Source of the DNA: Vitrella brassicaformis CCMP3155
Lineage: Eukaryota; Protista; Chromerida
Assembly (NCBI GenBank): GCA_001179505.1
Contig: CDMY01000261.1
Span: forward strand, 1-64,000
Length of the DNA: 64,000 bases
Reading direction: 5' to 3'
A program made the position numbers and the translations under genes. Below the pieces are notes generated by a model. The model ran no database searches, was not told where the DNA came from, and saw nothing but the letters and a program-made list of their open reading frames with translations. The first letter of the stretch is position 1. Every line of letters starts with the position of its first letter. This document shows, piece by piece, positions 52,601 through 55,141 of the stretch.

Positions 52601-53662
52601 AGCTCCAGCAGACGGGTGGCGAGGTGCTCCTCCAGCGTCATGGCCAGGTCCCGCTGGTGACACCCCAGGCGAGATAGGGACTCGGCTATCGCCACCACCT
52701 GACACACACGGACAGGGATCATGGTGTGTGAGGATGGTGTGGTGTGGTGAGAAGGTTTGGTCACACACATCATCCCTACCTCTGGCACTGAGAAGTGTAG
52801 GATTCCGAGCTTGACCTCCTCCGCAATGACATTGACGAGCGCCTCATCGACGATGTTGAGCCGACTGAAGGCCCAGGCCACCTGACACAGCTCCTGCACA
52901 CACACACACACACACACACATGCCCGCCCCCGCGACACACAATGCAGTCAGTGCAGAAGAACTGTTGTCTGTCTGTCTGTCTGTCTGTCATCTTTTTCCC
53001 CCCCACACACAGACCTGTGGCGGGTAGGTGTTTGACTTGTCGATGACCTCTCTGGCGACGGCGTCGAATAGGTGCTTGCGGTAGATGTCCACCTTGGCGT
53101 AGTGGAAGGCCACCGATGCCACACCCTTGGCAGCCATGTGGGGCAGTCGATGGAGCAGTTCCTGGGCCAGCACATCGAAGAGCGGCTCATGGCGGATCCC
53201 CAGCCGCCCATATCCCGCCACAATCACGGCCATGTCGGTGTGCGTCAGCTCCGTAGCCTTCAGAGCAATGTACTTGGACAGGACGTTGAACAGCTTTGGG
53301 TCTGCATGGCTGCCCTTGGAGAAACCGATGACGGCACGCGCGAGTTCCTTGGTCTTGAGTGACGAGGCGAGGTCCATGAGTGCAGTGGAGCAGCGCTTCC
53401 AGAAGTTGCGGTTGGAGAGAGTGAGCTGGCCGGCGGTTTCGATGGTGTCGATGAGTTGCCCGGCCTCCATGTGGTGGATGGGGGTGCGGACGAACGTCTG
53501 GTAGGGGATGCGCTGGGGGTTGACGGTCTGCTCGTACTTGTCATACTCCGACAGACGCTCCCGCTTCTTGGCGAAAGATCTCCCCTGATGCTTCACAGAT
53601 GCGGCTGCGGGCAATGAGTTTCTCAAGGCAGGCGGCCTTGCAAAGGCCCTGTTTGGCAGCAT
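49658..53662 (-). CDS. Helical-repeat (HPR/OPR-like) organellar protein, multi-exon
   Basis: Transit-like N-terminus MLPNRAFARPPALR..RSFAK; ~37-aa repeats LKTKELARAVIGFSK, LTHTDMAVIVAGYGRL, MAAKGVASVAFHYAKV, YPPQELCQVAWAFSRL, FSVPEVVAIAESLSRL, LKPKEIGQILQAL. Confidence 0.82.
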
Positions 53663-53718
53663 CTTCCTTGAGTTGAGCCAAGCTTGCAGGTGGAATCCAT
53701 GAAACTGCTCACCCGGCT

Positions 53719-54040
53719 TGTTGAGAAACCAATTAGACTATAGCCGAGGTTATCCATCTGCAGGCCGACAGATCATTTCCTCAACACCTCCCTTCGGACC
53801 GCAGAGTTAGGGTACCCCCCTTTCCGCTCCTGCCTTTCCAAGGTTTCCGGTGTTGCTCCAGGAATGGAACTCGCGACCCCTCCGCAGCTGCTCAACGGGA
53901 TTGTTTTCCGCCCGGCTTGACTCCTTTAGGGTGCTAACCGGGGTTCGAACCGAGGTCAGTGGGCACATGACCTGTTGAGAAACCAATCAGGCTATAGCCG
54001 AGGTTATCCATTTGCGGGCCGACACATCATTTCCTCAACA
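53719..54040 (-). mobile_element. Non-autonomous miniature LTR retrotransposon (TRIM-like, Ty1/copia-type signals), 322 bp
   Basis: 68-bp LTRs (53719-53786, 53973-54040; 5 mismatches), each TGTTGAG...CTCAACA; TSD CGGCT at 53714-53718 and 54041-54045; on the minus strand CA|GGTCATGTGCCC directly after the 5' LTR (PBS-like) and GAAGGGAGG directly before the 3' LTR (PPT). Confidence 0.9.
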
Positions 54041-54640
54041 CGGCTGAGGGCGATCCCGTTCATTTTTTGAGCAGTAGGCCCCCTAACCAAGAGCGTCTTA
54101 CGCACAATGAGTGCGTCCATCCCTTTACAGAAGAACACCGCCGCAGTTATCGCCGAACGTCAAGATTGACCACCAGCCCTCCACTTGAGAGAACGCTCAG
54201 AGACACAGCACACACAACATCGACTGCACAGGTCCTCCATGTGTCCATATCTGATGCATCCATGCGATAGACACATGGGCCATGGGTCAACTCATACAAG
54301 CACCCACTCCTCTACAACCATCACGATGCGCGTGCACACGAGGGGCTGCTGCGATATCACGACTGACTGGATGATGGGCGTAATTGTCGCCGTGCTTCTT
54401 GCGTGCGCCCGTCGACTGCCGTCCACGGGCGCACGCAAGAAGCACGGCGACATAATGGATGGATCGACGCCCTTGCTTGACCCATCGGGGTGCATTGCAT
54501 GGAGGGCTGGGATGGATGGATGGACTACAGTAGGAGAGGGAGAGTAACAGGCCTGCCTGAGAAAGAAAGCAACCAAAAGCCAAGGAGAGGCTGTGCTGCT
54601 GGCAGCCGACTTCCACGTCTTTCTTTCTTCACGCACATGC

Positions 54641-55141
54641 GTGCCGCTGGAGATAACCTACGACGGCCAGGAGTGCTACTGGCTCGACCCGCGGCGCGAC
54701 GGCAAGGCGGACGGCCCGGGCACTGTGGTGACGCGTGACTGCGAGAAGAAGCTGTACGTTGGCGACATGAGGGAGGGGGTGCCGCACGGCCGGGGGATGC
54801 ACACCGAGGACGTCTCTGACGCCCACTTCTGGTACGAGGGCGGGTGGAAGGAGGGCAAGATGCACGGCAAGGCGGAGGTGGAGCTGCAGGAGTTCGGCAT
54901 TGAGGGCGAGCACCCCCCCATGCGTGCGACGCTCTTCAGTGGCGAGTTCGAGGGCGGCACGGCCACGAAGGGCACCCTCTTTCCTGGCCCCCCAGTGGCC
55001 ATCCCGCTGAACGTCAAGTGGGAGGCTGGCGGGAAGCTCGATGACGCCGCACGTGGTGAACTGTCCAACATGTATGAGAGACGGAGTAACGATGATCTGC
55101 CCAACTGGCTGCCTTTGTTTCCAGCCGACGACGACGAGTAG
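54641..55141 (+). CDS. MORN-repeat protein; no in-frame ATG found at the expected start
   Basis: LYVGDMREGVPHGRG, WYEGGWKEGKMHGKA and LFSGEFEGG fit MORN consensus YxGxWxxGxxHGxG. Confidence 0.7.
   Translation: MPLEITYDGQECYWLDPRRDGKADGPGTVVTRDCEKKLYVGDMREGVPHGRGMHTEDVSDAHFWYEGGWKEGKMHGKAEVELQEFGIEGEHPPMRATLFSGEFEGGTATKGTLFPGPPVAIPLNVKWEAGGKLDDAARGELSNMYERRSNDDLPNWLPLFPADDDE

Follow-up and report, generated by a model that had tools for sequence, protein, structure and literature searches.

The window, a stretch of 64,000 nucleotides from Vitrella brassicaformis CCMP3155, contains a divergent intergenic region of roughly 900 bp. On one side of it, the first long open reading frame (ORF; 52988..53662, minus strand, ATG-initiated) may encode a FASTK/RESC6-like helical-repeat protein. 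This ORF had no match in Pfam, and in a protein-language-model feature search its nearest named clusters were FAST_1/RESC6 (scores 0.91-0.94). As a lead only, the 'HPR' label that the first-pass annotation gave to this gene would fit the FAST_1/RESC6 organellar RNA-binding cluster. On the other side, a MORN-repeat ORF (54593-55141, plus strand; Pfam PF02493, E 5e-5) is divergent from the FASTK/HPR-like gene. Two repeats lie between these genes: a miniature LTR retrotransposon (TRIM) and a palindromic repeat. The latter is a near-perfect 68-bp palindrome at 54385-54452, about 340 bp from the TRIM, with 28-nt arms (TGTCGCCGTGCTTCTTGCGTGCGCCCGT) and a 12-nt loop. About 10 other genome loci contain the palindrome or its 40-bp arm, and a strong depth spike was seen over the palindrome in all four public runs that were consulted (contigs of unrecorded type, from four studies). 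Its appearance is that of a small foldback or MITE-like repeat.

Direct reading of the sequence gave the TRIM a total length of 322 bp, made of two 68-bp LTRs and a 186-bp interior. The direct repeats (53719-53786 and 53973-54040, start-to-start spacing 254) are identical at 63/68 positions, and their five differences (T/C, A/G, C/T, A/G and G/C) correspond to four transitions and one transversion. Both repeats have the termini TGTTGAG...CTCAACA, which form a 7-bp terminal inverted repeat. The whole unit is flanked by the 5-mer CGGCT (53714..53718 and 54041..54045) as a target-site duplication (TSD); other copies are flanked by different 5-mers. The structure initially noted (the short LTRs with their mismatches and inverted ends, the duplication and the size of the interior) was thus recovered to the base.

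Because the purine tract adjoins the repeat at 53719-53786, the sense strand of the TRIM is the minus strand. Read on this strand, the element consists of the 5' LTR (53973..54040, 67/68 identical to the family consensus), the primer-binding site (PBS) GGTCATGTGCCCAC (53959..53972), an interior ending in the polypurine tract (PPT) GAAGGGAGG (53787..53795; family consensus GAAGGGGGG) and the 3' LTR (53719..53786, 64/68 identical to the consensus). The junctions between these parts are direct. The 186-bp internal region as a whole (53787..53972) is non-coding and conserved in six copies, and no ORF was found anywhere within the TRIM. The motif GGTCATGTGCCC (53961-53972, minus strand) lies directly against the 5' LTR, so the purine tract and this motif do occupy opposite LTR junctions, as had been described. 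When the plus strand was read, neither LTR/interior junction resembled a PBS or a PPT. Altogether, the element displays the architecture of a TRIM, with direct TG...CA terminal repeats, a short interior and a total length below about 1 kb, and also its signals, with a PBS adjoining the 5' LTR and a PPT of the form GAAGGG(A/G)GG adjoining the 3' LTR.

Further copies were searched for in the Vitrella brassicaformis assembly (72,700,666 bases, or 72.7 Mb, in 1064 contigs). Six full-length TRIM copies were found: the window copy and those on contigs C340, C307, C269, C477 and C515, by which they are named here. These other copies are 303-335 bp long, lie on separate contigs and are 87-90% identical over matched spans of 306-335 bp. 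In five of the six full-length copies, the whole unit is flanked by a perfect 5-bp TSD, and these are all different (CGGCT, AGAGC, GCCTC, GAACC and CCCCT); the sixth, C515, is degraded. The LTR also occurs alone. Among at least 18 complete solo units that were examined, about 12 are independent and have a perfect 5-bp TSD, and two more have duplications matching at 4/5. A 32-nt LTR core gave 33 genome matches at up to 3 mismatches and 0 for the reversed control. When the more diverged matches from similarity searches are included, the total of solo LTRs is roughly 25-30. Solo LTRs with identical flanks were seen on two pairs of contigs (C448 and C133, loci L021/L022; C365 and C585, loci L016/L023), which are probably duplicate or allelic contigs, so that the insertion counts are slightly inflated.

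The family is thus mobile: it is found, far beyond chance, at independent loci that each have a separate 5-bp duplication. The dispersed copies and solo LTRs with independent duplications that the first-pass annotation proposed to look for, and that are expected of a TRIM, do exist. No pair of 68-bp LTR matches in the genome encloses more than an interior of 186-198 bp, indicating that no autonomous element carries these LTRs; the 68-bp LTR was also absent from all 30 reverse transcriptase (RT) loci searched (±1.5 kb). Loci L007 and L024 were considered as longer elements and rejected, being diverged or truncated TRIM fragments. The number of differences separating the LTRs of a single copy is lowest in C340 (1-2) and highest in C515 (8-12); the window copy has 5/68 (7.4%). 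Given this divergence of its LTRs, the window copy is one of the older insertions. Finally, no tRNA gene was found within 1.5 kb at 30 TRIM-family loci, and Ty1-like targeting of Pol III genes was rejected on this basis.

The candidate primer is the nuclear initiator tRNA-Met(CAT), whose gene lies on contig C378 (G000:C378, about 53625-53706, minus strand; locus L120, 66-147) and is the only gene of its form detected in the assembly. It has three G-C pairs in the anticodon stem and a T-loop reading ATCGAAA, with A54 and A60, which are hallmarks of eukaryotic cytoplasmic initiators; its first pair is C1-G72, not the usual A1-U72. The gene is interrupted after position 37 by a 9-nt intron (tgcagggac), and after splicing the mature anticodon arm reads GTGGG-CTCATAA-CCCAC. 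Searches with contiguous patterns missed this gene because the intron splits the anticodon arm. Indeed, the pattern GGGCTCATAACCC for the initiator anticodon arm had no match in the genome, and GGGCNCATNACCC, GGG..CAT..CCC plus T-loop, and CAT..ATCGAAA gave only a tRNA-Met on contig C467 and non-tRNA sites. An Rfam tRNA scan scored 63/599 candidates, and none of the 20 nuclear matches fetched was a Met tRNA. The 11-mer GTGGGCTCATA gave 27 genome matches (5 for the control), one of them being the C378 gene. Contig C467 (71 kb, locus L065) is tRNA-dense and is probably the plastid genome; the anticodon arm of its tRNA-Met reads GGGCTCATGACCC. This tRNA-Met and the plus strand of the TRIM have the 11-mer GAGGTCAGTGG in common, which was taken as chance because the common pieces are not collinear.

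Positions 27-40 of the spliced initiator tRNA (GUGGGCUCAUAACC) are the exact complement of GGTTATGAGCCCAC, the 14-mer that forms the PBS of TRIM copy C307, and the pairing spans the splice junction. The PBS therefore complements the anticodon stem-loop of an initiator tRNA, and not its 3' end. Since the pairing crosses the splice junction, the primer would have to derive from mature tRNA by a cut within the 3' strand of its anticodon stem. Half-tRNA priming from the mature initiator tRNA-Met is a well supported reading of this complementarity.

Comparison of the PBS with the host anticodon arm, already suggested as a check on the element, gave 14/14 in C307 and in the copia family described below, and 12/14 in the window copy, whose variant GGTCATGTGCCCAC, with mismatches opposite A37 and U33, is also found in C340 and C515. 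The PBS of C477 (GGTCATATGCCCAC, 11/14) has the same two changes and a third, and that of C269 has one substitution and one inserted base. Three copies with two mismatches and a fourth with three, all relative to the only candidate primer, count against the priming model. A variant primer tRNA for the 12/14 site was considered and rejected, as the assembly holds no gene with a matching anticodon arm. Because three independent insertions, including the youngest-looking, C340, carry the same two changes, the 12/14 variant was probably present in a transposing source element, where it would have been tolerated.

Copia-type reverse transcriptase (RVT_2) had at least 63 matches in the genome. The sequence downstream of RT genes was scanned for a purine run followed by TGT, and Vitrella copia elements were found typically to have GA(G/A)(A/G)GGGG directly before an LTR start TGT(C/T). 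One family, with its type copy on contig C902 and relatives on C703, C536, C861, C89, C416, C832, C1037 and C622, has junctions resembling those of the TRIM. In the C902 element, RVT_2 (4.5e-46) is encoded downstream of a retroviral integrase SH3-like domain, in the gene order of Ty1/copia elements. The two pol ORFs of this copy are in different frames and overlap, and its contig ends before the 5' LTR; no fully intact partner copy was recovered.

At the PPT and LTR start, C902-type copia reads GAAGAGGGG followed by TGTTGCGGAATGAT, and the TRIM reads GAAGGGGGG followed by TGTTGAGGAAATGAT. In a longer form of the tract these become GCGAAGAGGGG before TGTTGCGGAATGAT for the copia and CCGAAGGGGGG before TGTTGAGGAAATGAT for the TRIM, and with more of the LTR included, GCGAAGAGGGG before TGTTGCGGAATGATACGCCC and CCGAAGGGGGG before TGTTGAGGAAATGATGTGTCGGCCC, respectively. 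By our own count, 23/26 aligned columns are alike, the closest agreement among the families read. The resemblance is also seen just upstream of the PPT (CCTAG...GCGAAG). Directly after the LTR, GGTTATGAGCCCAC is present at seven 5' LTR junctions of the C902-type family, identical to the 14-mer of C307, and the base that follows it is also common to the copia and the TRIM. The LTRs themselves are less alike. They measure 228-229 bp in C902-type copia and 68 bp in the TRIM, and they end in ...GTTACGCAACT and ...GTTTCTCAACA, respectively; this difference between CAACT and CAACA counts against the partnership. It also explains why the pattern CAGGTYATGNGCCC, used to search for a shared PBS, matched TRIM copies only: the copia LTR ends in CT, not CA, and its family was missed. 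In shuffle tests of LTR similarity between C902 and the TRIM, the counts were 25/2000 for the first 34 nt, 79/2000 for the last 40 nt and 185/2000 for the whole LTR, and a control copia LTR (C515) had no similarity to that of the TRIM. Outside the first ~35 nt and the last ~40 nt the likeness is weak, and common descent of the LTRs is only suggested.

Thus the TRIM and the C902 family have their cis signals in common, the usual situation in pairs of a TRIM and its partner. A search for an autonomous copia with the same LTR ends and PBS had been proposed as a check; the C902-type family matches in PPT, LTR start and PBS, and the LTR bodies are weakly alike. Both the 5-bp TSD with TGTTG...CAACA termini and the sharing of cis signals with a family that encodes RVT_2, with the integrase upstream, are features of a Ty1/copia-dependent element.

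A second copia, located on C515 (G000:C515:46957-56800; loci L042, L032 and L073), has 315-bp LTRs and internal duplications of 2.4 kb at 94% and 0.75 kb at 98%. It was rejected as a partner, having other LTRs and a PBS for a tRNA 3' end. In this family, TGGGCGCAGCAA lies directly after the LTR and, by our own reading, would pair exactly with the C378 tRNA 3' end plus CCA (...UGCUGCG-C-CCA). This match cross-validates the identity of the initiator tRNA. Moreover, with the C902 PBS on the anticodon arm and the C515 PBS on the 3' end, two priming modes on one initiator tRNA-Met coexist among the copia families of a single alveolate genome.

On these grounds, we consider it very probable that the window holds a complete, non-coding, non-autonomous TRIM of 322 bp, mobilised in trans by the C902-type Ty1/copia family. 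The first-pass view of a non-autonomous Ty1/copia derivative with very short LTRs is supported by the TSDs, the C902 cis signals and the tRNA complementarity. Directly observed were the element's structure, its family of copies with their TSDs, the signals common with copia and the complementarity to the tRNA; packaging, tRNA cleavage and possible present-day activity are what we infer. RNA running from the 5' LTR to the 3' LTR would be packaged by copia proteins. The primer for minus-strand DNA would come from the cytoplasmic initiator tRNA-Met in its mature, spliced form: a 5' fragment with its 3' end at C40, in the anticodon stem, would pair with the 14-nt site directly after the 5' LTR. 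Plus-strand synthesis would start from the purine tract adjoining the 3' LTR, and copia integrase would recognise the TGTTG...CAACA ends and generate the 5-bp duplication. Most insertions would later have collapsed to solo LTRs. Against this model, U3, R and U5 would have little space in a 68-bp LTR, no promoter was identified in the TRIM LTR, and neither a transcript of the element nor a tRNA half was seen in the contigs of the public runs.

The solo units might also be read differently, the 68-bp unit being a MITE with 7-bp inverted repeats and a 5-bp TSD, and the 322-bp form being two MITEs around a captured sequence. Indeed, the unit bears the terminal inverted repeats TGTTGAG/CTCAACA, it is about five times commoner alone than paired, each time with a 5-bp TSD, and comparison with the family consensus showed that solo units are slightly less diverged than the interiors. 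However, recombination between LTRs normally leaves solo LTRs with TSDs, which have been reported even for 85-bp LTRs (PMC3281118). In all 6/6 paired copies the units are direct and enclose the same interior in the same orientation, and the TSD flanks the pair, not each unit. The junctions consist of a purine tract and a 14-nt complement of the initiator tRNA, and the same two signals are found in a coding copia family. The MITE explanation is thus effectively refuted, with a very small probability left to it. The idea of a local tandem duplication or an assembly artefact, for which only the bare direct repeat in the window speaks, is refuted and hardly conceivable given a multi-copy family with independent TSDs on many contigs. 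In the contigs of the four public runs, moreover, the locus was present with the element, and no joint skipping it was seen.

Another question is whether the TRIM is mobilised by a different copia lineage or by a gypsy element, its PBS being a convergence on a popular primer. The weak similarity between the LTR bodies of the TRIM and C902 is in favour of such a partner, as is the fact that element ends were examined at only a few of the at least 63 RT loci. Against it, C902 is the closest of the families read at the PPT and LTR start, with further likeness immediately before the PPT. The 14-nt PBS and the base after it are identical between C902 and the TRIM, whereas the C515 family uses the tRNA 3' end; the 5-bp TSD also fits a copia. 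A partner other than the C902 type is therefore quite unlikely.

Most plant TRIMs have a PBS that matches the tRNA-Met 3' end. Closer in this respect to the Vitrella element are the fungal Helenus TRIMs, whose PBS complements the anticodon loop region of tRNA-iMet and which have Copia partners and 5-bp TSDs (Kojima 2024, PMC10886601). The tRNA-iMet genes of their hosts carry introns, so that the mature tRNA is implied as the primer; their partners were deduced from Copia families with an identical PBS, and siblings of these Copia families have a PBS for the tRNA 3' end (PMC10886601). The Vitrella TRIM is likewise a short, non-autonomous element with an anticodon-arm iMet PBS, an intron-bearing tRNA gene, a 5-bp TSD and a likely copia partner, and the same split between anticodon arm and 3' end separates the Vitrella C902 and C515 families. 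Anticodon-arm priming would need a spliced tRNA in Vitrella, as in fungi. However, Helenus is defined by tRNA-like sequence in the LTR, and the 68-bp LTR of the Vitrella TRIM is without one; the two T-loop-like motifs of this element are in the interior only. Moreover, Vitrella is an alveolate alga, not a fungus. Fungal TRIMs with an anticodon-arm iMet PBS and copia partners mean that the element is already known in kind.

Drosophila copia and yeast Ty5 are cited as known cases of half-tRNA priming (PMC10886601). As in these elements, the 5' LTR of the Vitrella TRIM is immediately followed by a PBS for the anticodon stem-loop of the initiator tRNA-Met, and the LTR ends TGTTG...CAACA and 5-bp TSDs are also alike. 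Whereas copia and Ty5 are autonomous and about 5 kb long, the Vitrella element is a 322-bp non-coding passenger. With plant TRIM/SMART elements, it has in common the architecture, the size class, the 5-bp TSD, the occurrence of solo LTRs despite tiny LTRs and the proximity to genes. The SMART element FRetro129, for instance, is 292 bp long with 85-bp LTRs (PMC3281118), and has only the LTR ends, PBS and PPT in common with its partner FRetro64. The ratio of solo to complete copies differs, being about 5:1 in Vitrella and 1:3.4 to 1:50 in grasses (PMC3281118). The Vitrella TRIM is not a size record, as the smallest reported TRIM, CcaRetroS9, is 233 bp long with 52-bp LTRs (PMC4717578).

In the chromerid genome paper, a supplementary table gives, for Vitrella, 93,233 bp as 'putative TRIM/LARD' and 213 kb as Copia (PMC4501334). 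The earlier remark that no TRIMs had been described in chromerids thus stands as far as a described family is concerned, but not for the bulk category, which had been tabulated. The LTRharvest and LTR_finder settings published with that genome (100-1000-bp LTRs, 1-15-kb spacing; PMC4501334) do not include 68-bp LTRs around a 186-bp interior, so that structure-based finders would miss this TRIM. Solo LTRs of 68 bp and an initiator tRNA gene split by an intron are both easily mis-annotated. What is new is a fully dissected TRIM family, with ends, TSD, PBS, PPT, primer tRNA and likely partner, for Vitrella and the chromerid/apicomplexan neighbourhood.

The interior of the TRIM contains two T-loop or B-box-like motifs. 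One, GTTCGAACCC (53941..53950, minus strand, 22 nt downstream of the 5' LTR, consensus position +23), is intact in 5/6 copies; the other, with consensus GTTCGATTCC at +102 (53861-53870, minus strand), is mutated in the window copy (GTTCCATTCC). At least two such motifs occurred in mononucleotide shuffles with a frequency of 2e-5, a significance that is overstated since the motif was chosen post hoc. They could represent a Pol III element, a packaging signal or the remnant of a tRNA-derived ancestor. A tRNA-like interior was rejected by four approaches: Rfam/Infernal, run at E up to 10 on the six copies, found no tRNA and no other RNA family; ARAGORN called no tRNA in the element; relaxed ARAGORN calls were no more frequent than in shuffles; and BLAST of the interior against 22 host tRNAs gave matches at the T-loop motifs only.

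An A-box-like sequence, TAGCCTGATTGG, was nevertheless read by us at LTR positions 47-58. The perfect B-box GGTTCGAACCC starts 43 nt after the start of this A-box, which is the spacing of a tRNA gene, and the second B-box is ~80 nt further. It is conceivable, though unlikely, that a tRNA-gene-like Pol III promoter extends from the end of the 5' LTR through the PBS into the leader. The element would then be an alveolate 'TRIMp3', in which a tRNA-like module would span the LTR/interior boundary with the PBS in the place of the anticodon arm. Against this reading, no tRNA fold was detectable, the A-box is without the conserved A and there is no T-run terminator. Moreover, no tRNA- or 5S-derived sequence, as found in the LTRs of Helenus and TRIMp3 elements, is present in the LTR of the Vitrella element, the B-box-like motifs being confined to its interior.

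The position of the TRIM relative to the neighbouring gene is also as first annotated: the ATG of the HPR-like minus-strand ORF, at 53662, is 56 bp downstream of the element and in the same orientation. In run X7, which is possibly RNA, depth was zero on the TRIM interior and the next 100 bp, and a contig over the gene reaches 53767, 49 nt inside the 3' LTR. For the influence on the promoter or 5' UTR of the neighbouring gene that had been suggested, this contig end is a weak hint, and only that because contigs break at repeats: transcription of the gene could start in the 3' LTR. Should this gene, for a putative organellar RNA-binding protein, really take its start site from the LTR, that would make a minor case of transposable element co-option.
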